A stretch of 47,185 nucleotides of DNA from Pelomyxa schiedti. Lineage: Eukaryota > Protista > Evosea. The position numbers and the translations under genes are program-made. The notes beneath the pieces were generated by a model. That model searched no databases. It was not told where the DNA came from and was given only the letters and a program-made list of their open reading frames with translations. The stretch is taken from NCBI GenBank assembly GCA_020536535.1, contig JAHLWZ010000630.1, positions 1 through 47,185 on the forward strand, written 5' to 3'. Shown in pieces: positions 408 through 44,722 of the stretch; position 1 is the first letter of the stretch; the number at the start of each line of letters is the position of its first letter.

Positions 408-612
408 AGCAGCGGAGATGGGGATGGGCAGCGGCACCGGAAATGGAGCGTTGTTCGTTGAGGAGTTGTTTTTTAGCAGTAGTGACCAGTAGTACCGGTT
501 GTCCATTGTCTCATACAACCTCCTCAACGACGCCATCTCCGCCTCCATTTTCTTTTCTTTGTGGTTGTCATCTTTCGCCGAAAACCAACAACAACGAAAA
601 ACCAAGGCGGCG

Positions 613-1992
613 ATGGGGAACACCAATGAAACAGCACCACCTGCACGAGCGATCGCACCGGTGCCTAACGAACGACCTCAGGTGATGCCCACGGACCGGT
701 GCTGCCTGTGCTTCACGCCCCGCGTGGCACCCTACGCCCTCATGGTGGAGCTGCTGTTGCGCTGCGGCGGCGTGTCTTCGCTGCGCAGGCACGTCCTGCC
801 ATCCTCTCCCTCTACGTCGCCATCGTATCCCCTAATGGGAGGAGATGCAGATGTGGGGGGTGGTGTGGGGCAATTCGACTTTGCAGTTGCAGTTGCTGCA
901 GCTGATGACCAATACACTTACGAACACGCAAAGAGAATGGTTGGGCTGGGTGCACCAGAGCACATTGATAGTGGCACCAGGGGGCACAAACCGGTACGCC
1001 AGAAATTTGTCATTGTGTATTTGCTTGGAAATTGCCGCTGGCCGATACCTAAGGTGGACTGGATTGTCGCCGTGCGTGCCCTGACTGTGTATGACCTCAC
1101 GGATATCGTCGTGTACCGGGGTTGGATGCACTGTGTCGTGCTAAAGTTCAAAGATGTTCTGCTCCCCCCACACAACCAAGACCTGCCATTGGTTCCACTA
1201 GACAGGGAAGAGTGTTCAGCCGACTGGCGAGTATTTGGGAAACATACAGATTGGGATCGCAGTGTTGCAGGCTGGCATATCTGTTTTTTACTTGTAGCAC
1301 TGCACAGGATTCCTGGATTACACATTGACAATGTTCACTATCTCACGGACCTTCGCCACTGTCACTCCATTGGTTACCTAAAGACAATTGATAAATATCT
1401 TTCTGAATTTGGGTCACCATTACCTTGTCTGTCAGTGGACTTTGATGAATTGGATTTGGCCTGGATCCAAACACTGCACAAAGAAGAACTCCTTGTGTGT
1501 GACCCATATTCTCCATATGAAAAAGTACGAGATGCATTTGTTGACATCACTGAAGCATTTTATGTCTCCTTGGCCCTTAGCCTCCACCCACAGATGAAAG
1601 CCCAAGTTTTAAGGGTTTTAAGTTCCAAAATGGGAGACACCAAATTGCCAGCAACTTCTTTACCAACTTCTGCCATTGAAACCCAACAGACAATTGCTGA
1701 CATGACTTCAGAGTGTGCATCACTGTTTCAGATTAAAGCCGCCAATGTAGAGCAAGTATGTGCTTGGCTCAGACCTCTTGGTGTCACTGAAAACTCCCTA
1801 AGTATCATCACAACAAAACAGCTTGAGGGAAGCATACTTGTGAATTTCTCTGTGGAGCAGTTGTGTGATCTTGGCCTCACTGTTGGAGATGCTGAGCACA
1901 TTTCAGAACATGTTTTAGCTAATCTTATGTTGGAACCTCATCAAGAGCAAGAAGTACAATCTGATGCCAGGGAAAAGGGCAGTCACTTGTGA
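613..1992 (+). CDS. Intronless protein (459 aa from first ATG) with a C-terminal SAM domain
   Basis: Uninterrupted ORF 499..1992, first ATG at 613 (MGNTNET). The C-terminal segment NVEQVCAWLRPLGV...LEGSILVNFSVEQLCDLGLTVGDAEHI fits the sterile alpha motif pattern. Central region not recognised. Confidence 0.75.
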   Translation: MGNTNETAPPARAIAPVPNERPQVMPTDRCCLCFTPRVAPYALMVELLLRCGGVSSLRRHVLPSSPSTSPSYPLMGGDADVGGGVGQFDFAVAVAAADDQYTYEHAKRMVGLGAPEHIDSGTRGHKPVRQKFVIVYLLGNCRWPIPKVDWIVAVRALTVYDLTDIVVYRGWMHCVVLKFKDVLLPPHNQDLPLVPLDREECSADWRVFGKHTDWDRSVAGWHICFLLVALHRIPGLHIDNVHYLTDLRHCHSIGYLKTIDKYLSEFGSPLPCLSVDFDELDLAWIQTLHKEELLVCDPYSPYEKVRDAFVDITEAFYVSLALSLHPQMKAQVLRVLSSKMGDTKLPATSLPTSAIETQQTIADMTSECASLFQIKAANVEQVCAWLRPLGVTENSLSIITTKQLEGSILVNFSVEQLCDLGLTVGDAEHISEHVLANLMLEPHQEQEVQSDAREKGSHL

Positions 1993-3951
1993 GTAGTAGA
2001 AACATGCCCTGCAGGGTGCTGCCACCAGTGATGGTTGAATCAGGAGGTAGTGAAGTGTGACTCAGTGGGCACATCAGTACCATTTTTTGAAATCACACTC
2101 TTTTTCACTGTGGTTGCTTTCTGAAAAAGTCACTTCACTTCAGACCATTTAAATTTTACTGTATTCTTTTTGTGATGTTGTTCCCACACCACCAAAACAT
2201 GGCTTCCTTTGTCTTATGATGAGCTTGTGGTGGTGCTCACAGTGGCGGTGGTGCTTGTGGTGGTGACAATGGTGGTAGAACAAGCCATAAACTTGCATCT
2301 CATCCTTGGCTGAAGGGTAAAGCTTCTACCCACCTTCTGTAAATCAGGTAAAGGTTCATCAGTCTCCTTAAGGACTTGGTCCAGACCAAAAGCATGCCCA
2401 TTGTGTTGTTGAAGGACAGTACTATCAGTTGTACTGTCTGAATCCGGTCTCTTCTTCCATCCGGCTGAACGAAAGCGGTTATGCTGGTTTCGGACTCAGT
2501 CAGTGGGTCTGAAAAAACGAATTTGAAGGGCAGGTGGTATGTTGGTGGTGCCATTGGCTGTGTGGTGAGTCAGTGCAACAACAACAAATGGGATAATCAG
2601 GATATGAACATATTTTAGTTGTTTAAAATTTGAAGTTACACTCTGAAATTGAGAAACCTGTACTCATTGTGCTGTGGGAAGCAGGAATTGATCTCAGAAC
2701 AAAAAAAGTTCACTGTGCAAGACATGAGAGATTGACTTATATCTGAGCAAATGCCTTCAGAGGGCCTCTGACCAGAGCTGATTGAAAGAATAAGAAAATG
2801 TGGTTTTGTTTTATTCACTTTTACCCTCCACAGACGGGGTTCAATCCCGGCCAAACCAATTTTTTTTTAAATTTTCCTATATATATGGTGAGTGCATGTT
2901 GTTGGCCACAGTCTGTCACACACCACAATTGTCCAAAGTAGGGCAGCAAAATGCTTGTAGACCTGTGGTGTCACAACACCCCTGCATTGTGGAAACACCA
3001 AGCTTTGATGTAACACTTCATTTCCCCCAGTGTCCACACCAATTCAATGTAATCCAACAACAGGGCACCACCAATTAGCTGCAGGTGCCCCACAGCTTGC
3101 CAACCAAAAAGGAGCAGGATGCTGTGGGGCACCTGCAGCTAATTGGTTGTGATTTAAGCTCCTGCCAACCTAGTCAGGCTTTTGCCAATGAATCAGGTTT
3201 ACAGAACCCAGGAAATAACACCCAAAAAGCACAAAATTACAGTCAAATTGCGACTCTGTGGTTGATATTGTGTAAAAATCCTTGCTATTTTTGTTCGTTA
3301 GTACAAGACCTAGCCCCAGTGATAAATAAATGTAAGTTACTAAGGCACTCATGCCCAATCAAATGTGGCTCTACACACTGTCTTTCCTAAGACTTCATTT
3401 AAGCAAGACTAGAAAAAAATGAGAGGTTCTACCATAATAACCGAGAAGAAGAAAAAACAACAAATAAACGAGAAGAAACAAAAACAAGGAAACCTTTAAA
3501 CTTGTAACTATGTAAAGCAAACCCCTGCAACTTGTTGACCAAGTACATATCTTGCTCCAACTTGCGTTTTGAATGAAGCTTCTCCCTTGCCTGCTGTATT
3601 TCCACCAAACTGAATGCGATCACACAATTGTGAGAACAGTGTCAGTGGTGACCCACTGGTTGCCATAACTGCAGGGCACACCCGGAGCAAGTTTTGTTTC
3701 TGGTTAGTTTTAGTGTAAAGAAAGTGAGTAGGCAGTCAATTACATTCACAGAATAATAATAATAATAAAAGCAGGGAAAATGCCAAAGCCACACGCAATT
3801 CAGATACACTGTATCAATATCAAATAAAACTAGAAAACCGTGCATATAAACAAGAAAAGTAACACAACACAAAACACAAAAACAAAATGAAACCAATGGA
3901 AGGCGACAGTTCACGGAACAGATCCAATCACTCTCAGAGCACAAGACATCA

Positions 3952-6689: not shown

Positions 6690-9199
6690 GAGAATCACCT
6701 GCGTTAAGTAAGGATCTGAAAGGCTGAGAATAGGAGTACCTGAGGGTTCCAATTTGGCTGAGTATTCATACTGGAATACAGAAATAGATCATGAATGACT
6801 TTGGACTATGTCAGGCAAAAGAATGTGAGGACACCACATACTTTCATGCACCAAAAGAGCTTTGGCATTTGGCACATCTCTAGCACCGCTATCTATGGAG
6901 CAACTGGCGCAGCAATACTTGCAGCAAACCAGTATCTGCGTGCCACTATTCATATCATCTGGAGGCACCAGAATCCTTTGATGAAGTTAGTACGGCGTTT
7001 CAATTGAGAATGGTGTTACCCTGCACAACACGGGAGGGAATACAACATGAATAAGCCGTTGTAATTCTGATGCCAAGTCAGCAGGAAGCATAGGCATCAA
7101 CACAAGAAAGGCACAGCATAAAGCTGGAATATTTAGTGGCAGAGGAAACGCAAAAGCACCAGAAAGGCAGCAATACAGCCAGACAAGAACACCAGCCTCG
7201 AATTAGTGTGGAAAGCAAGAAATTACTCAGCATTCTGGCAGTTTTCAAACCGGACTTACTACTTGAGTTAGAAGCAAGCTATGAGGAGCTAGACATACCA
7301 GAGTTGCCAAGCAGCATCAACCTAGCAACGCGAGCATTGAGAGTAATTCAGCACTGCAATTAGGACCGCCATAAGCAAGAATAGTGGGACAAGGTATCAC
7401 AGTGATCACTGGAACAAAGCTCAAGACTTTGCGATGTGCAAGTGAGACTAATATGCACTCCTTTTCAAAAGGGAAAAGCAAATGCACAGCTCAACAGTAA
7501 TGCTGCAACGCAGACACTGTTTAATTAATTCAGGCAGAATTAGCAGCACACAAGTAGAATTGCAGAAGTGGAAGCCTTGCTCTCAACACCTATAATCGGC
7601 TTAGAATTCAATGCAACCCAATTCAGCATACTTTCTGGAAGAAGTCAAAGCTGCAGTCAGAGTGGGGATAGCGTAATCTGTCAGGAAGGTACAGCACATG
7701 GAAAGAGAAGCAGTAGATATTGACATTCAGGGAGTTTTTGCCAAGCTTAGAGCCCAGCACTGAGTAGTACTACGCAAAGCGGCAGGACTCTTTTACAACC
7801 TAAAACAGAATTAGAATTTGAATATCGTGAGAAATAAACCTGAATTATTTGGAACATCGTAGTAAAGACCTGCAGAGAAGCACAGCCCAGTGTAATAGGC
7901 AGCAGACACATCTGGAAATTTCGGATTTGCAGAAAAGGGCATGGCAACGGCAGTAATGATGACTTCTCACAACAGGGAGAGCCCTAACCTGCTAGCCACA
8001 ACTGCAATCCAGGAACTGCTTTGTACAATTCTAAGTTGGGTGGAGAGTCAGCAAAACGCAGGAAATACCTTCAGGTTGGAGGGATCTGTGGTGAGCAGCT
8101 AGGCATCTACTGTAGTGATATTGGACTACTGGAGCACTGAAAACGAATCTGACATGCAAGGCATCATCAACAGCGATTATTGGCAAGAAGGAGGGAGTGC
8201 AAGCAGAAAACGCAAATTTCCTGCAATTCGAACAGAATCCTGTATAGGGATGCCACAAATACTGCGCTAGAAGGAATCTGAGAGACGTAGGAGAAGTGGC
8301 AGACACACTTGGAGATACACAAAGCACAGCAAGCAGCACGAAGGACTCAGTATTCTATTCAAGCTGGACATAGTTTTTTGGAACAGCATTCAACGCTAAT
8401 GGTCCTGCAGAGCCAGTACAGATATGAAGGAACCTTTGTGTGGTGTTAGCAGTGTTGGAGGGAAAGCACAAGTTACCAGCAGCACTGAATCGAAGCAACA
8501 TTGTGGGGAATAGGAGTCCTACAAGGTACGAAACTTTCAGCTGAGGCAGGAGTCATGCATCACTGACATTGCCACGAATACCAAGACAGAGGTGAGATGA
8601 GAACCAATGGCATTGCAAGCATTGATAAATCGTTACTACGAAGCCTTGCAAATATCTCTGAATTCAGAGTTGGAACAGGAAAATATTCTGAGTACAAACC
8701 ACAACGAGAAAGGCAAGGAAGCAACCCAGTAAATGGAATCAATACTCTTCTCTGTGGCTATACATAAAGACCTGATTACTATTAGAAATAACCATGCAAA
8801 CACGAATTTGCAGGGATACTTGAGTTGGGTGTGTGGGCAAGCCAGTGGAACTTCCAAACCCAGAAAGAGGTTGACCCTGGGTCACTGTTAAAAGCGAGAT
8901 TATACCAAGGGGACAGCATACCCAATCAATTCATCTTAGCGAGTGGCAGATGGGAAATCCATCCTGAGTACAACTGTGCAACTGGAGATTCACAAGTGAA
9001 AATTCTTTGTCCTTTTTTCTTGCTAGAACAGTACCAAACATCTGAATGGTTAGTATTGAGACCCGAATCAAACTACAGACCACACCTACAGTATGGCTGA
9101 TGTGGCACAAATAAAACTTTCCAGTTCAAATTCAAACTCGCGGCAAAGACCACACCTAGTAGCGCTTATGGTTACGATGCTATCTAACTTTGGGGGGAA

Positions 9200-13722: not shown

Positions 13723-16644
13723 TCAGAGGAGTTTTTTTCGTTTACCCCCTGTTGACAACAGTGATGAGTGTAATGAAGTGCACGTGGTGGTCTTGGGCTA
13801 CACCTAATCCTAAAAAAAGTAAGCAACAGCAATGGTTAGTGCCAAGAAACCTTGTGGTCAAGAGGGGATGCCAGTGCTTTCTTCCCTTTCATCTTAGCTG
13901 TGTAAATGTGAATAATCAAGTTTGTGGTGTGCTCTTTACCTTCTCGTGCTGCGGTAGCTTGCGCTCTTTGTTGCTCTCTTGAGGGTAGGTGTGCCGGCAC
14001 CACGAAACCGGGAATTTGATTCCCATATAGGGCAAAAGAATTGTCCGTAGCTGTAAAAGGAATATCCTCTGCAGACAAAAAGATGCGGCAAGCTAGATGG
14101 TTGAGAGAAAGAAAGTTATTCTACTATGTATACTTACCACTTTGTTTTATTTGTGGACACATGTTATTCACGAAGTCATATGCTTCTATGTTTAGTCCCT
14201 GGGCAGTCTTGCAATCAGTCATTTGTATAAAATCTGAGGTTTTTTTATTAGCAGAGAAAAATCACCTAAAAGATTGGGCAGGTACAGTAGCTATCAGAAA
14301 CCTCACTATTGTTTTTCCGGGTGATGCGAACGGGGGTAATGACGGTAAAAGGCTTTTTATCTTCTACCAATACAAGGCTAGCTCCATAGCTGCAGGCTGT
14401 TTCCACGGCAACGTTGCACATAAGTCCAACTCTAAAATCTACAAGAAGTAGGTACCTACTCTGTAATAACCGGTTAACGCACTTGGAGTATCGGAGAAAG
14501 ACCAGGAGAGATTCAATTTTGAAGCCCAAACATGGAACAGGTTCCGCAGTCTACTGCCCGGTGTAATTAGTTCTTGAAGGCAATAACTTTTAAATGGTGA
14601 ATCTAGGTATCGCCTCAGCAAGTGCATCCAGGGGAAACTTGCCATCTAAAAGAGGTTATATTCTTTTAGAAAAAGAATGAGGGGCATACAGCATGATAAG
14701 GGGCAGCGTCAGGGTCTGCAAGTACAGGCAGACTCCCAAAAGTAAATGGGGGCACAAACCGGAACTCAAGCGTTGAAATTCGCTCTACAATAGAAAAGCT
14801 GTTCATGTTGAGGTCGTGACTAAGAGTATGAAAATGCTGCGCTTCCGCCATTGTGGTTGCTGTGAAACGCATGCAATCAGGTGTTTCACTTTGTATTTCT
14901 CCTGGGTGCAATGCCCCTTGTAAATCCTCTAAACAGCTTGATGCCCCAGCTTCACGTGCATATCTACCATGAGAATGAGACAAGGAATACAAAGGAAAGC
15001 AAACCTAGATAGGATTCCTGCCTGCAGTTTACTGGCTGCCATTTTTATGGCTCCATATTGTTTATGTTGGTTTGATTTTACCCTGAAAAAGTGAGTCTTG
15101 CTGCTACTAGATTGTAGTGTACATGTCTATGTAGGCCATCATCATACTGGCTGGGCCAAAAAAAAATGATGCCAGTTCTTTCCACAAATTCTCTTCATAG
15201 GTTGTACCAAATAACCCTAATCTAAAGATCAGCGGAAGTATTATCTCTGCCACCGGGGGTGTTATTAGAGGGTTCTACACAGGAGAAGAGAGTTATTAGT
15301 AAACACTAGAACGTTATGTACGTACAACTATATTGCGGAATTGTATGACATTAGAAATTGGTGGGATATCAATGGGTGAGCTGCTAGAGGTTATGATGAT
15401 GACCTTGCTTGAAATCATGATTTCGTGTAGTTTTCTAGGGTGAAAGGAGTTAGTGTTATGAAACAATGTTGCACTCATACGTAAAACCAATAGAAGCATT
15501 AGGGAAAAGAGGTGCTGCTTGAAGTCTGCTCACATATAACACGGAATGGGCGGCTGTCAACCAAGCGCCGTTATTCTCTGCTATTAGGTTCATAAGTTCG
15601 GTGCTGGTACCTATTGAGGAGCGTGAGAAGACTCTACCTAAGTTGGAAGAGACCTTCGTGTTGACATAGATCTGAAAAATAGAGATGTACAATGGAGACC
15701 TTAGAAGCAGTGCGAGTTTCAAGCTCCGAAATGAAGCCCATAACATTGTAGTCGCAGTATAGCTCGTCACCTTCACATAGTGTCAGTGAAAATGCTACCA
15801 AACAAAAACGAGTGAAAGATAAAAACTCACCAACGGTTATCCAGCAGGCTTGCAAATTTATACTGGCTTCTGCCCACTCACGAAAACACTTGGTCCTCCA
15901 CCATATTGTTCTAAGTGGCCTGCAATTCCAAATGTTGAGCGCTTCCGGGTCTGTATCAAGCTCCACGGAGTCAACTCGTACCTCGTCCACGGTGTATTGC
16001 GACAGGTGTGGTTCTGTGAAACTTGATGAAGATGTTGTAGTAGTTGATGTGGTTTGTGCGGTAGGGGCAACATTCGAGCAGGGCTCTGCCCGTTTGTAAA
16101 TTGTTTGTTCCGGTAGCTGTGGCATAGGCCGAGAGTTGAATTGTGCAACTGTCGGCGGTACTTTTGGGTGCAGGGGAGGGGGTTCTTCAAGTTGGGCAAG
16201 GGCAGCGCGTATGATGACTGATAGCTTTTCGCTTTTGGGTGTGGGGTTCCTGGTATAACCACTCGCCGCTCGAGCACTTCGGCTGCAGAAGGCCATCAAG
16301 GCCAACAATCGGGACCCCACATTTGCCTTCAGGAATTCAGGATTTTTCCATAATGCAGGATCATCGAGCAACTCAGTTATTTCAGCCAGTTTCCCACGAT
16401 GCCCAGCCATGAGGTTTTCTTCAACATATTCTACAACCCTCACAAATGGCCTGGGGCCGTGTTGTCCAGTTTCCTCGAAGAGTTTAGTGCCAACATCAAT
16501 GAACTCATTCCAGACTTCCACATTCGCGATGGGACAGCTATTTGTCTCTATGTTCTTCGAAAGAGCAACGAAACTCCTTGAGTGCACGTTGAGATCTCGC
16601 CCCACATCCGACTCGTATTTTTCAGCATCCCACCCTGTTGCCAT
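13723..16644 (-). CDS. Multi-exon protein, paralogue of the divergent gene at 17140; putative degenerate NTPase + restriction-endonuclease-fold (Crinkler-like) architecture
   Basis: ATG at 16644, exon 1 to 15831, intron 15830-15771, then several short introns. Motif-level similarity to the + gene runs along its length. The 3' end is uncertain (possible stops at 13836, 13804 or 13723). The domain call is inference. Confidence 0.7.
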
Positions 16645-17139
16645 GGATGTTTTTTTTCGATTTAGTAACTGATGCAGAGATCCTGAACGTGGCGCAGCGA
16701 TTTAATAGCAAAATGGACTTTACTGCATTAGGTTTTGGGCTTGACAAGTGTTTTGACAGGCAGGGAACTAGTGTCGCCCAGGAGACAACTCAAAGTTATG
16801 TTGTAGATCAACTCCTAAAATTAAAAAACCCAAGACCATGAAAGCTGGTGTGTACCGACCTCTGCGATATTTTTTGTTGCTGTTGCTTGGCTTTTTATTC
16901 TCCAGTGCTTTGGACAGGCGTCTTGTGTCCTACGTTAACGTCCGTGTGGTCTACGTCGATAAGGCAACACGCCCATTGTGAAGTGCATCGTACTCCAGTT
17001 CCTCGGGTTCCACGGTGGGATTTTGCAGCTTCCTTTTTTACTAAAACCATGGTGGGAACATTCTAGATTTTCTATCGCTGCACAGGATCGGCGTGCTGCC
17101 GAATACACGCACGGGACCACTTGGACGCAATAACACGAG
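16645..17139. promoter_or_regulatory. Probable bidirectional promoter of the paralogue pair
   Basis: 495 bp between two divergent ATGs; CpG-rich towards 17140. Confidence 0.5.
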
Positions 17140-20100
17140 ATGTTATCGATAGACAACGAGCTACGACGATCGCTTCGGACCGGTTCGACAACGCCGCCGG
17201 TACCTACGGCCCCCACGTCGATTTCTGCCGAAACCCCCGCAACGTCCCCGGCCCCGTTGGCACCACTTACGGCGAGCACGACCGCGCAGGGACCAGAGGA
17301 GGAGAGGACGCTGGACCGGAAAAGGTGCACGCCGTCAGCCGCGATCTCGCCCGCCCAGGCGCTCAACGACACCCTGCAGCGGACCTTCTCGCTGCGCTCG
17401 CAGGCGTTTGTGGCGTTCCGCGGTTTCATGGAAGATGAGATGCTCCCACAAAATTTCACAAAATCTGAGTGGGATTCCGTTGTGGAAATGGGTACTCAGC
17501 TACAGCAGAAAATGAGGTCAGGCCACAGCATCGTCTCTGATGCCCACGCGATGCAATTTGATGTGAGATTGAGAGAGAAATTGGAGGCTACCATGAAAAC
17601 CTTCACTAAGGTATGGAAGAAGAAGGATGCACTCAAAAGCGAACCCGTGGTGGTTCAGGTTTTAGTCGCCATTGCATATTTCCTGAAGTGCAAAAAACAA
17701 TGCGGAAGTTCCCCTTCCAGTGGAGACATCCCTATCTCCACTAGATTTACACCTACAGAGCAACAACCGAAAATGCCTTCAACACAGTATCCAACTGCCA
17801 CTTCCTTCCCAGGTTCAAATTCCTCCTCGGCTGCACCTGAAAAAGACCCCAATAACTACGTTTTATGCTTAGTCCCACTGCCAACTCCAGAGATTCCTCA
17901 ACTCCATTTACTACAGCATAATTCATTGGATACTATTGTTGAAATCCAGTGCAGTGGTGTAGATATGGAGCCATTGCGGGGTTGGAATTTTCGCCCTGCA
18001 AACCCCTACACAGTGTCGTATAAAACACAGGAGCATAGAAATGTTGCCATAAAGATGCTTTGTAAGAAAATAAGTGATCCTCTCAAACTATGGACTATTG
18101 CCGGTATTAAGTTCAAGTTTTACTTTATATTGAAAGATAACGTTCGATAAAAAAGGAAAGGAGGATATCGCCTCCGAGACTGTTGACAGTTTGGAGGGCG
18201 AAATTAGAAACATCTGGAAAACAAGATATTACTGCAATGCGCACACAACGGCGCCTTGTTGCTGTCACATTTCATTTGATCGATTCCTTCAAAACCAAGG
18301 TGTGGAGTGAACGACACTTTCATACAAATCTCTGTTTCCTTACTTTTATAGTTGATGCTGAAACTTTATTTTCTGAACTTCATGAGTTCAGAGACGACTG
18401 GAACTCAGTCAATGGTATCTTGCACGTTAGCAATGTCAGAGATCCGGAGGGGACAACACCAAGGAATATACAAGATGCACTCTTGTAAGCATGATATTGT
18501 TTTATTTGCGTTTCCATTGAATGTGTTTTCTCCAGGAATCTTATTGAAATTGGGAAGAAAATTGCCTTGATTATTTCTGGATCTCTTTTGGTTCTGTCCA
18601 AATATAATTTAGAGCCAGGAATCTTTGAAAATGTTTTGGTGTGGCATTTACAGTGCAACTCTCGGCCTTTATTAACTTCCACAATAGACTCCAATTGTAT
18701 CTCGCGAAGTAGCTTTTCAGCTACTCTATAATATTTTTGATACAACACCTGGCAGTTCCTTCTTTGGGTTGGAACAAGATAGAATATTGGACCAAATGCG
18801 TCTGGTTGCTGCAGCTCTAGAATATACTCCTACGCTTTTTTTGGAGTTTCTCTCAGTGTATGAAACATTTTACACACCTCAATATCCACCAACCATAAAC
18901 TACCTAGCATGCAAAGGTTCTCTAGTAAATACCCAGATCGTTCCCCAGATTTGTTAGATATAATATTGGAAAGTTGGAAACAAGTTCTAAACGATATCAC
19001 TGAAGAAACTAAGTATAAGGAGAGGTGTTTGTTATTCCCTGTTCTAAAGATTGTATCCCTTTTGAGGTCTATTGGTCGCATCAAGATCTCCGAGTTGAAA
19101 GAACACCTGTTGCGTATCCTTCCAGAAATAGATTGGTGTGGATTAAGATCAAGAGGAACTTTTGAAGTTCCGTCAAGTAAAAGCCAAAGTTATCCCTTAA
19201 CATTTTTAAACTCACGAAAAGAAGGTAAAAAACTAATAGAAATTGGAGAGATACTGGATACCATAGGGTGGAGCTGTTTTATTCCGCTTCCAGGGGATCG
19301 TTTCAAAGTCTATGTTCCTTTTGCAGTCTTAGCACCTTTGTATGACCCTGAATGGCAACTAGATCTTGATGTATTAACATATCATTCACTTTTTTTTGTT
19401 TTAATCCTTTTTTTTCCAGACAGAGTCTTGGCGTCACAAAATGGTTTTGATGAAACCAACAAAAGGATTCTCATTTGAAGAATGTGTTCAACGTGTTCAA
19501 ATGGATCCGGGATCTCCTGGGTTCTGTGCCATGTGGGAATCGCCAAGATATCATGCTGATCCCAGTACATTTTTTTTTGTTTGTAGACTTGCATTAACAT
19601 AAAAAAGATTCACACAAAAGAATAAAGACTTTTACTCATTTGCATGAGGTGTCCACAGATTGGATGATAGTCTATAAGGTTCTTGGCTGTAAAAATGATG
19701 TAAAAACAGAAACCACGACAGAAAAAGTTGATAGCGTCAGTTTAGGACTTAAAAGTGTGTTATTTTCCCTGTTTTCCTCTTAACTAATCCATTCTCTAAA
19801 GATAAGATATGCATTGCAAATCCTGATGCGCCAGATTACATTCAAAGTGCGAAATGTGTTATGTGGTTTTTTTGTATTTACTTCTCTCCCCCAGATCAGT
19901 CGCAAATTACCTGCAAATCTAAAGCCCTGGAATCAAAATGTGAAAAGGGCTGGGTAGAAGCCCTCAAACGAAAAGAGAACGGTGAGTTTCTTTTCTATTC
20001 TTCGTTTCACTAAAAACAAATTAGCAGTGTACACATTTCTTTCAGCCAATCAGTTAGTGCCCACACCTGCATTGCTGGACTACATGAGAAGAGACCACGT

Positions 20101-20349
20101 TGTGCTCATTGACGGCATTAAATTCTGGAAGGAATTTCGGATAATGTCAGGGCCATATCTCTTCTGTCTTTTCCCTGAAGCTTTTTTATATGCCATTGAC
20201 CCTGCCTTAGGAGCACGCGTGTTTGGTATGAAAAAGTTTCTACTTGCTGCCCTGCTAACTTTCTGGCAGACCCAAATATTCATCATGAACAAAATCACCC
20301 ACCTATACCAAAAAAGTCACGAGCCTGTTCTCCAGCAAATAGCTCATAA
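17140..20349 (+). CDS. Multi-exon protein, paralogue of the divergent gene at 16644; putative degenerate NTPase + restriction-endonuclease-fold (Crinkler-like) architecture
   Basis: ATG at 17140, exon 1 to 18103, intron 18104-18155. The spliced frame reads WTIAGKEDI...GILHVSNV...KIALIISGS...TPIVSREVAFQLL...ALEYTPTLF...KGFSFEECVQR...ANPDAPDYIQNQSQITCK...VYTFLSA...PKKSRACSPANSS* (TAA 20347-20349). Confidence 0.75.
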
Positions 20350-43028: not shown

Positions 43029-44537
43029 TTAGCAGAAGCTGCCCCAGAGCCTGCGCCACCGCAGTGCCTCCCTCGCGTCCCTGGTGCTGGCCCCTTCCCC
43101 TCTCTTGTAGCACACGGCCAGGTTGAACTGTGCCACTCTGTCTCCAGCAATTGCTGCCAGACCGAACAGCTGGAACGCCTCGTCGAGGCCGCAGTGGGGA
43201 ACACCGATCCCTCTGGCGAGGCACAGCCCCAGCTTCGTTTGTGCTGGGACACTGCCTCTTGCTGCTGCAAGCCGGAAGTAGGGAACTGCAAGGCTCAGCT
43301 GCCGTGCCACGCCTTTCCCGGTGAGATACAGGTGGCCCAGCCTCTCTTGTGAGTGCCATTCCCCTTGGTCAGCTGACAACTTGAAGAATTTGGCAGCAAG
43401 AGTGAGGTTAACGGGAGTGCCAGTTCCATGCACGAATGACTCGGCCAGGTTCTTCTGGGCGAAGGGGTCGCCCTGTGCTGCTGACAGCCTGAACAACCGA
43501 AATGACTCTGCTGGATTCACCTGTGAATTGAGCAGGGCGAGGGTATGCTGTGCCATGGGTTCGCCCTGTTGCATAGCAAGGATCCAAATCCTCGTGGATT
43601 CATCCTCATCCTTTGCCACACCAACTCCATATCTATAGCACATTGCAAGGTAAGTGCAGGCTTCTGAACTCTCTTTTTCATAGCCTTGTGTTAACCACTG
43701 AACTGCCTTGGGCTCATTTTTATCAACACCATGTCCACGTAGGTACATCAGACCAAGGAGGGTCTGTGCGTAAGAGCTGCCACCCTCAGCAGCGCCCAGA
43801 TAGTACTTTGCAGCCTTCTCCATGTCTTGCTCTACACCATTTCCCCAATTGTAACACATCCCAACTATCTCAAGTGCCAGAGGGAATACAAAAGGATCAC
43901 ATTCCAAGGCTCTCTGCACTGCCCCTCTCTCGTCTTTAGGCACCCCAACTCCATACAACAGGCAACAAGCCTTCACAGTCATTCCAATACACCACAGTGC
44001 CCTCTCCTCCTCCCATTTCCTGAAGTCCATCACACAGCCTGCAGGCGGTGGCCTGTTGACACACGCAGCATCAAGCGCCATGTGCATGAACCTCAGTGAA
44101 TCCTCCCTGCACCGCATAGCAGCTTTCCGCAGACCCTGCACAGGTAGAACAGTGTACGGCCTGTGCTCCTTGAACAGCGATGGCTTCTCACTATACACAT
44201 ACGCCAGCACCATGCAGCACAGTGCTCCCCACGGCACACACCGGCGCCAATTCTCTGACCCCTGTGTGCGTGGCCTGCCTTCGTCATCGTGATCAACAGC
44301 ACTGTCAACACCACCGCTACTACCCTCATCATCATCATCATCATCATCAGTGTAGGTACATCGTGGGTCCAGAGTGGATTCCAGCAGCGGGTTCAAGTCG
44401 AAATCGAAGCGGCATTTCGGCGACGGTGACGTCGACGAAAATGACGGCGGATGGGGACTCAGCAACTCGATGCATGAATGCAAAGCATCAGAGTACTCGC
44501 CAAGGCCCAGTTGTTGCAGCAGTCTGAGGGCTATCAT
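43029..44537 (-). CDS. Intronless Sel1-like repeat (SLR) protein with about 9 repeats
   Basis: Repeated units of the form A..LG..Y..G.GV.KD...A..W...AA.QG. The first ATG in the ORF is at 44537; the last repeat is truncated. Confidence 0.88.
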   Translation of the reverse strand: MIALRLLQQLGLGEYSDALHSCIELLSPHPPSFSSTSPSPKCRFDFDLNPLLESTLDPRCTYTDDDDDDDEGSSGGVDSAVDHDDEGRPRTQGSENWRRCVPWGALCCMVLAYVYSEKPSLFKEHRPYTVLPVQGLRKAAMRCREDSLRFMHMALDAACVNRPPPAGCVMDFRKWEEERALWCIGMTVKACCLLYGVGVPKDERGAVQRALECDPFVFPLALEIVGMCYNWGNGVEQDMEKAAKYYLGAAEGGSSYAQTLLGLMYLRGHGVDKNEPKAVQWLTQGYEKESSEACTYLAMCYRYGVGVAKDEDESTRIWILAMQQGEPMAQHTLALLNSQVNPAESFRLFRLSAAQGDPFAQKNLAESFVHGTGTPVNLTLAAKFFKLSADQGEWHSQERLGHLYLTGKGVARQLSLAVPYFRLAAARGSVPAQTKLGLCLARGIGVPHCGLDEAFQLFGLAAIAGDRVAQFNLAVCYKRGEGASTRDAREALRWRRLWGSFC

Positions 44538-44722
44538 CACATCCACCCTAACTCCAAAAATTTCCCAATTTAAGCGTCAAATTGGAACCAAAGTGAGCCT
44601 CCAAATTGCTTAACTAGTGCACACTTTGGACAAAGTGGAGGAATTTCAAAGTGGCACCGCTTTGAGCATTCTCAAATCGGGCACAAAATGGGGATTTTCC
44701 CAGGTTGCCTACAAATTGGAAG

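Follow-up and report, generated by a model that had tools for sequence, protein, structure and literature searches.

Contig JAHLWZ010000630.1 (C630) of the Pelomyxa schiedti assembly GCA_020536535.1, which was analyzed over its positions 1 to 47,185 (hereafter the window), carries two intact, divergently oriented, intron-rich genes of 12 to 14 exons, located at 13836-16644 on the minus strand and at 17140-20349 on the plus strand. These genes are true and very old paralogues, both of them intact, and they belong to a gene family that is restricted to P. schiedti. Exon models were built on GT-AG sites, on frames that stay open, and on what is conserved in paralogous contigs of the P. schiedti assembly searched (52.4 Mb, 5337 scaffolds; published genome, PMC8887013). 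Spliced models were used for alignment statistics, hidden Markov models (HMMs), and tree inference, and the minus-strand protein was analyzed exon by exon and through profiles.

The plus-strand gene corresponds to the NCBI entry "hypothetical protein Pelo_8022" (P0010, 859 amino acids) and contains no internal stops. Our 12-exon model (17140-18103, 18156-18299, 18352-18484, 18536-18638, 18688-18857, 18908-19370, 19420-19564, 19608-19754, 19802-19857, 19900-19981, 20025-20225, and 20270-20349) agrees with Pelo_8022, except for two additional in-frame introns that NCBI places in exon 6 and a difference of 2 to 4 residues at one junction. The two introns lie at ∼19014-19067 (54 nt) and ∼19179-19226 (48 nt), and the frame stays open when they are retained; since both are in-frame and stop-free, retention is possible without a frameshift. 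The nearest paralogues of this gene are found on C1301 (61 to 66% identity) and C1314, and both of them break where NCBI places the two introns. The minus-strand gene, a divergent member of what we term the M clade, likewise has no internal stops and encodes 766 amino acids in 12 exons (16644-15831, 15770-15654, 15610-15481, 15434-15326, 15274-15123, 15082-15005, 14963-14690, 14645-14483, 14438-14286, 14233-14138, 14092-13940, and 13897-13836), which are conserved in the paralogues on C1505 and C1233 and are separated by introns that are all GT-AG and 40 to 60 nt long. Its last exon (13897-13836) ends in ...AKMKGKKALASPLDHKVSWH before the stop codon, and the C1505 counterpart reads ...AKQGKRALEP...HKVSLHQTHR. 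Because this exon is conserved with C1505, the lower limit of 13723 proposed in the first-pass annotation is ∼110 nt too low, and the gene stops at 13836.

The proteins encoded by the two genes are ∼20% identical. A BLASTP comparison of the first exons gave a weak match (24 bits, E = 0.002), and exon-level tblastn yielded no cross-clade matches, the two clades being joined by profiles only. These two results speak for an artefact, that is, for a chance likeness between unrelated neighbors or for one member being a pseudogene. However, Smith-Waterman alignment of the spliced models reached a local score of 101, compared with 42 ± 5 for 300 shuffled sequences (maximum, 62; z = 11.7), and hhalign of the clade profiles, each built from one gene and its two nearest paralogues, returned a probability of 96% and an E value of 3.3e-9 over 641 collinear columns. 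Moreover, an iterated family HMM joins both clades, both genes are open through at least 12 exons, and seven introns occupy the same aligned residue in the same phase in the two genes (plus/minus residues 322/272, 370/311, 414/354, 449/391, 505/441, 708/613, and 803/696). Three additional introns agree in phase, at positions where the alignment is less certain. In view of the shuffling statistics, the hhalign result, and the shared introns, the artefact reading is effectively refuted, and we give it next to no credence. Thus, the earlier proposal of an ancient duplication kept as two intact divergent genes holds, the alignment that it suggested checking against shuffled sequences is significant, and the three introns that it had matched between the genes are correctly placed among the seven now recognized. 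The pair would have originated by an old inverted duplication.

The motif pairs by which the first-pass annotation had aligned the two proteins are also confirmed, save one. The "ANKKTSD" segment attributed to the minus-strand gene sits in a canonical 52-nt intron (14285-14234), and its seeming conservation arises because the branch point (GCTAAT/GCTAAC) and the CTCAG acceptor are common to this intron and that of C1505. In the corresponding C1505 intron (L018, ∼1476-1425), the arrangement TGCTAAT/TGCTAAC...CTCAG is kept, though the proteins are ∼40% identical. Such a conserved intron region, misread in the wrong frame as a peptide (F-x-A-N...SD), can mislead exon calling that relies on reading frames in this genome. 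Intron lengths are very uniform across both genes (40 to 60 nt). In two introns of the plus-strand gene (18104-18155 and 19565-19607), the polypyrimidine tract is replaced by a purine-rich acceptor (GATAAAAAAG and ATAAAAAAG, respectively). Micro-introns of ∼25 nt or frameshifts at two junctions were considered and rejected; the junctions are instead a 43-nt intron (19565-19607), whose acceptor is AAAAAAG, and the 52-nt intron in which the branch point imitates coding conservation.

To delimit the family, the genome was searched with a cross-clade profile of exon 5 (A1), which gave 15 matches on 13 contigs, and the iterated family HMM connects all of these, the clade of the minus-strand gene included; the family comprises at least 14 to 16 genes in P. 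schiedti. A profile of the C-terminal block (A3), run against 1.84 billion protein representatives, returned nine proteins, and all seven of those looked up are entered as "hypothetical protein Pelo_... [Pelomyxa schiedti]". When the full-length paralogue P0001 was used in a word search, only P0001 itself and the plus-strand protein of the window were matched, and the two first exons retrieved nothing in such a search, as expected from its length window. Two matches from the searches of family and PDB profiles described below, one to MutH in P0005 (E = 0.11) and one to a nucleoside hydrolase (E = 1.2), were disregarded.

A maximum-likelihood tree of 14 copies (386 columns) placed the minus-strand gene with the C1505 and C1233 copies in a well-separated clade (support, 100/100), while the plus-strand gene grouped with the C1301 and C1314 copies (96/98). 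Pair partners were never sisters in this tree. The C1314 copy (Pelo_17326; P0009, 530 amino acids; L021 1692-1709) passes from the N-terminal domain and linker straight to the strand at the sensor-1 position, with ∼175 residues of the NTPase core gone; this copy is a natural variant with a deletion or one that is decaying. A recent segmental duplication with 82 to 88% nucleotide identity was also observed, which takes in a member of the family together with a flanking gene, their order rearranged (C642 [L040] 1790-3942 versus C564 [L041] 6929-9082, and L040 9434-10000 versus L041 5721-6317).

Head-to-head arrangement of family members was found in 3 of ∼11 loci. Besides the window, C964 carries Pelo_14820 on the minus strand and Pelo_14821 on the plus strand, whose products are 23% identical, with a spacer of ∼220 bp when the N-terminal domain encoded upstream is counted, and C642 carries a minus-strand and a plus-strand copy ∼1.9 kb apart. 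The NCBI model of Pelo_14820 (P0006, 585 amino acids; C964, L037) starts at 3471, and a helical N-terminal domain of the family type lies just upstream in the same open frame (3469-3813, minus strand; first ATG at 3810), so that the 5' end of the gene is probably missing from this annotation. The two copies on C156 are in tandem, those on C1301, C1314, and C1233 are single, with 2.3 to 6 kb of upstream flank devoid of any family signal, and the flanks on C1505, C867, and C1451 are too short to judge pairing. Since the nearest relatives on C1301, C1314, and C1233 are single and the C156 copies are in tandem, pairing is facultative. A hidden divergent partner at C564 was considered and rejected, the upstream open reading frame (ORF) there matching a different flanking gene of C642 and not the family.

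The branches of the partners are unequal in all three pairs, one being short and the other long. The terminal branch lengths are 0.22 for the plus-strand gene of the window versus 0.56, in addition to a long stem, for the minus-strand gene; 1.16 versus 2.01 for the plus- and minus-strand genes of C964; and 0.21 versus 1.52 for the minus- and plus-strand genes of C642. The long-branch partners do not form a single robust clade with the clade of the minus-strand gene; the C964 minus-strand and C642 plus-strand copies join weakly, which was flagged as possible long-branch attraction. The expectation that homologues would recur as head-to-head pairs is therefore borne out at C964 and C642, but the accompanying expectation of two family-wide clades is not, as no partner from the other pairs falls in the clade that the minus-strand gene forms with C1505 and C1233. 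The recurring pattern is one of a conserved partner accompanied by a fast-evolving one, with the pairing itself optional. Within the window, the ATG-to-ATG spacer measures 495 bp (16645-17139) and is, judged by this geometry, a putative bidirectional promoter; its shortness makes co-regulation of the pair plausible.

To describe the proteins at the level of fold, the plus-strand protein P0010 was modeled with AlphaFold2. The predicted layout comprises a disordered N-terminal tail, a conserved α-helical N-terminal domain, an S/T/P-rich linker, and the domains described below. The N-terminal domain (residues 70 to 190; 17347-17709, plus strand) consists entirely of helices, with predicted local distance difference test (pLDDT) values of 83 to 93; its counterpart in the minus-strand gene lies at ∼16629-16200, and it is the part through which the clade HMMs detect one another. 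Residues ∼290 to 560 form an alternating β/α domain followed by helices (pLDDT, 70 to 88), and residues 735 to 810 form a confident β-α-β-α-β-β unit.

The central domain is predicted to have an AAA+/STAND-type NTPase fold, with its core at residues ∼291 to 505 in exons 1 to 5 (18010-18857, plus strand), according to Foldseek, VIA-align, and ESM Atlas. Foldseek searches against the PDB placed the NRC3/NRC4 resistosomes, Apaf-1, NLRC4, DnaA, ORC/Cdc6, RFC, FtsH, and NSF at the top (E = 6e-5 to 5e-4; probability, ∼1). VIA-align matched model residues 291 to 535 with ClpX, Rpt subunits, FtsH, p97, ORC, and Vps4 (Z = 9.4 to 7.7; 200 to 220 residues aligned); 44 chains were found at Z ≥ 8, and the 50 rows listed were all AAA+/ORC-type ATPases. 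The ESM Atlas shape search retrieved AAA_14+DUF4143 (query residues 293 to 812), NACHT, AfsR/SARP, AAA_16, and AAA_22/TniB proteins, nine of the ten neighbors being of AAA+/STAND type and one unnamed. When the family motifs are placed on the model, "LKLWTIAG", which contains the WxxxG motif, corresponds to strand β1 and the first Gly of a degenerate P-loop, with "KEDIA" at the Walker A position; "ILHVSNV" is the strand at the Walker B position; and "KIALIISGS" (plus) and "KVIIITSSS" (minus) are the strand at the sensor-1 position, followed by the helix TPIVSREVAFQLLYNIF with the motif "TPIVSxxVAFQLLxxIF". Walker A GK[S/T] was found in no copy, the residues after β1 reading "IAGKEDIA", "VSGKDDIA", "ITGKKKHC", "VSGDHADR", "VWGPGNDC", or "TVGDELYC"; similarly, no copy has the acidic pair of Walker B, the strand reading "ILHVSNV", "ILHVHGL", "LLHVYDV", "IIHISNV", or "VLYVSRL".

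The block after the helical lid, GKKLIEIGEILDTIGWSCFIPLPGDRFKVYVPFAV (19221-19343, plus strand), is a helix plus β-hairpin that ranks among the three best-conserved blocks of the family, and it is predicted to be a winged helix from the order H-E-H-E-E at residues 563 to 606 of the model. Further downstream, the C-terminal α/β domain (19608-20225, plus strand) holds the best-conserved block of the family, "YTFLSA...WKxFxIxSGPxL...PEAFL", present in 9 to 12 copies. This domain may have a PD-(D/E)xK-like fold. Judged by entry titles, its top 30 structural matches are mostly proteins of the restriction endonuclease (REase) fold, including VC1899, LlaBIII, EcoT38I, Can2, Cdn1, AF1548, BspD6I, NucS, MspJI, XPF/ERCC1, AspBHI, PaqCI, FokI, and Cap4. 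The Asp of "VDxVxL" is kept in most copies, and the strand after it reads Y-I-Q, Q-Y-Q, Q-Y-K, or C-I-Q. No signal peptide or membrane segment was found in the proteins. Short basic patches occur near the C-termini (PKKSR, KMKGKK, AKKPR, SKRCR, and QQRRKASK) in P0010, P0001, P0003, P0004, P0005, and the minus-strand gene (13897-13839), the tails being otherwise unalignable, and these patches may be nuclear-localization signals. Thus, the first-pass statement that the pair matches no nameable family still stands for sequence, no model matching these proteins, and gives way at the level of fold to a description as NTPase plus winged helix plus REase-like domain.

The first-pass annotation had likened the pair to plant sensor/helper nucleotide-binding leucine-rich repeat (NLR) proteins. 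Plant paired NLRs include RGA4/RGA5 and RRS1/RPS4, and a paired NLR-like (STAND) immune module would consist of a sensor or decoy and an executor that form a hetero-oligomer and are transcribed together from the bidirectional spacer. The analogy has some footing in the fold predicted for the central domain: the top Foldseek matches by E value include NRC3/NRC4, Apaf-1, NLRC4, and NLRP14, with 430 to 640 aligned columns, the Atlas shapes include NACHT and AfsR/SARP, and the predicted succession of an N-terminal helical domain, a nucleotide-binding domain, a helical domain, and a winged helix is that of STAND/NLR proteins. In addition, the motifs "KVIIITSSS" and "L-x-P-L...A..LF" resemble the RNBS-B and RNBS-C motifs of NB-ARC. 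Lineage-specific expansion and divergent, asymmetric gene pairs are likewise common to plant NLRs and to this family, which is species-specific, expanded, and fast diverging and has three head-to-head pairs with asymmetric partners. However, the repeat sensor, the P-loop, and the obligate pairing of the analogy are not seen here. No LRR, WD40, or TPR repeats were detected in the Pfam scan of six full-length members, and the modeled C terminus is a compact α/β domain; nor did hmmscan find NB-ARC (PF00931) or NACHT (PF05729) in the same six members at a Pfam E value of ≤1. NLRs work by nucleotide exchange, whereas every copy of the family has a degenerate Walker A. VIA-align, moreover, ranks classical AAA+ proteins at least level with STAND proteins, and the pairs are facultative, with partners that do not fall into two family-wide clades. 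Overall, we consider a paired NLR-like module unlikely.

The predicted layout as a whole has a counterpart in the Crinkler (CR) proteins. In the part of a review that covers Zhang et al. 2016 (PMC5289972), most Crinkler C-termini are described as NTPase plus helix-turn-helix (HTH) plus REase, and some CR headers as α-helical. The order predicted here, from a nonenzymatic header to a P-loop-fold NTPase, an HTH/winged helix, and an REase-like C terminus, is the same as the one given there. Both families are multicopy and rapidly diversifying, and the basic C-terminal tail of the Pelomyxa proteins would fit nuclear or nucleic acid targeting. In contrast to Crinklers, the Pelomyxa proteins have no Ubl/LFLAK header, their N-terminal domain being helical in the model, and the Pfam Crinkler N-terminal model had no match in the six full-length members; all copies have degenerate Walker A and B positions and are without conserved REase catalytic residues; and the copies occur in a free-living anaerobic amoeba as intron-rich, old host genes that may be paired head to head. 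The nearest Atlas shapes are bacterial AAA_14 (PF13173)+DUF4143 (PF13635) proteins (rows 1 and 10; ∼293 residues, query residues 293 to 812, TM-score of 0.48 to 0.49), in which, as in the layout of the Pelomyxa proteins, a C-terminal domain comes after the ATPase core. The DUF4143 C-terminal domain is regarded as PD-(D/E)xK-like. The Pelomyxa proteins differ from these in having an additional N-terminal domain and linker and in being without a P-loop signature, and hmmscan found neither AAA_14 nor DUF4143 in the members tested.

These likenesses could also be explained by membership in, or descent from, the class of Crinkler/CR-type NTPase-HTH-REase toxins or its transposon-linked prokaryotic ancestors (AAA_14-DUF4143 or TniB-like), in which case the genes would be selfish or domesticated and the pairs would be uncoupled by-products of inverted duplication. 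The NTPase plus HTH plus REase architecture, with an α-helical header as described for some CR proteins in the same review section (PMC5289972), would be expected under this explanation, as would the Atlas neighbors (AAA_14+DUF4143 in rows 1 and 10, AAA_22/TniB in row 9), the C-terminal matches rich in REase folds, and a multicopy family with a truncated copy (the C1314 copy without its NTPase core) and a tandem (C156). Against it, the CR and DUF4143 models have no sequence match, a Ubl-type header is absent, and the REase assignment is weak. Furthermore, introns are common to both sides of the deepest split in the family, which argues that these are old genes of the host and not DNA that was mobile in recent times. 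A selfish or toxin-derived origin is held to be a minor, though not negligible, possibility.

We favor, with moderate confidence, the reading that the two genes are an intact old paralogue pair from a family with a predicted NTPase-fold core and a possibly REase-like tail, which would act as a conflict- or defense-type switch and would have lost canonical ATP hydrolysis. Because the same layout is seen in Crinkler and AAA_14-DUF4143 proteins, the family is read as a Pelomyxa-specific, P-loop-degenerate variant of such a module; the REase part of this layout is suggestive. The family is probably intracellular and conflict- or defense-related. Its proteins would form an oligomerizing intracellular switch or scaffold, possibly directed at nucleic acids, in which canonical ATP hydrolysis is no longer used. 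We infer such a function, as well as co-expression, hetero-oligomerization, and functional coupling of the partners.

Several results weigh against this reading and temper its parts to different extents. At the sequence level, no link to known families was found: Pfam searches with exon pieces and six full-length members (E ≤ 1) and searches of NCBIfam, PADLOC, and PDB sequence profiles gave nothing above noise, ESM Atlas feature searches with exon 6 and the N-terminal domain gave no usable match, and PF13635 (DUF4143) was not found in the P. schiedti genome. The fold evidence comes from shallow alignments (9 to 12 rows; 12 rows [A4] for the model of P0010), and the mean pLDDT of the whole model is 61.6. 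The C-terminal domain folded poorly on its own (pLDDT, 49.6; 75 residues confident), and its exhaustive VIA-align matches stayed at Z ≤ 5.8, under the caution level of 8 for that tool. Conservation is lacking at the candidate PD-(D/E)xK catalytic positions, as far as strands of a weak model assigned to motifs by eye can tell, which makes nuclease activity doubtful. As for the pairing, the nearest relatives of both window genes are unpaired, and no k-mers shared among 10 family promoters (the window and nine other members) rose above shuffled controls.

To our knowledge, gene families for innate immunity or genome conflict have not been described in Archamoebae. Pelomyxa harbors several prokaryotic endosymbionts, and the family is a testable candidate for a conflict or immune system in an endosymbiont-bearing amoeba. 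If the favored reading is true, the NTPase plus HTH plus REase architecture would extend to free-living Amoebozoa, and the "pseudo-ATPase" variants would provide a natural set for learning how such modules act without a P-loop. Should the predicted folds prove wrong, the family would come down to an ordinary set of orphan genes with local duplications. A more far-reaching proposal is that the pairs serve as a two-gene module for immunity or conflict in an amoebozoan, in which a conserved and a fast-evolving pseudo-ATPase of STAND/AAA+ fold with nuclease-like C-termini would assemble into asymmetric hetero-oligomers expressed from one bidirectional promoter, resembling paired plant NLRs in function while having arisen independently and possibly policing endosymbionts, viruses, or mobile DNA; in this full form, we regard it as speculative and rather improbable.

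Elsewhere in the window, two ORFs unrelated to the pair were observed. The first (499-1992, plus strand) encodes 497 amino acids with a subthreshold match to SAM_2 (E = 0.006), and the second is a long ORF on the minus strand (43029-44546) in which Pfam recognizes six Sel1 repeats (E = 1e-49).

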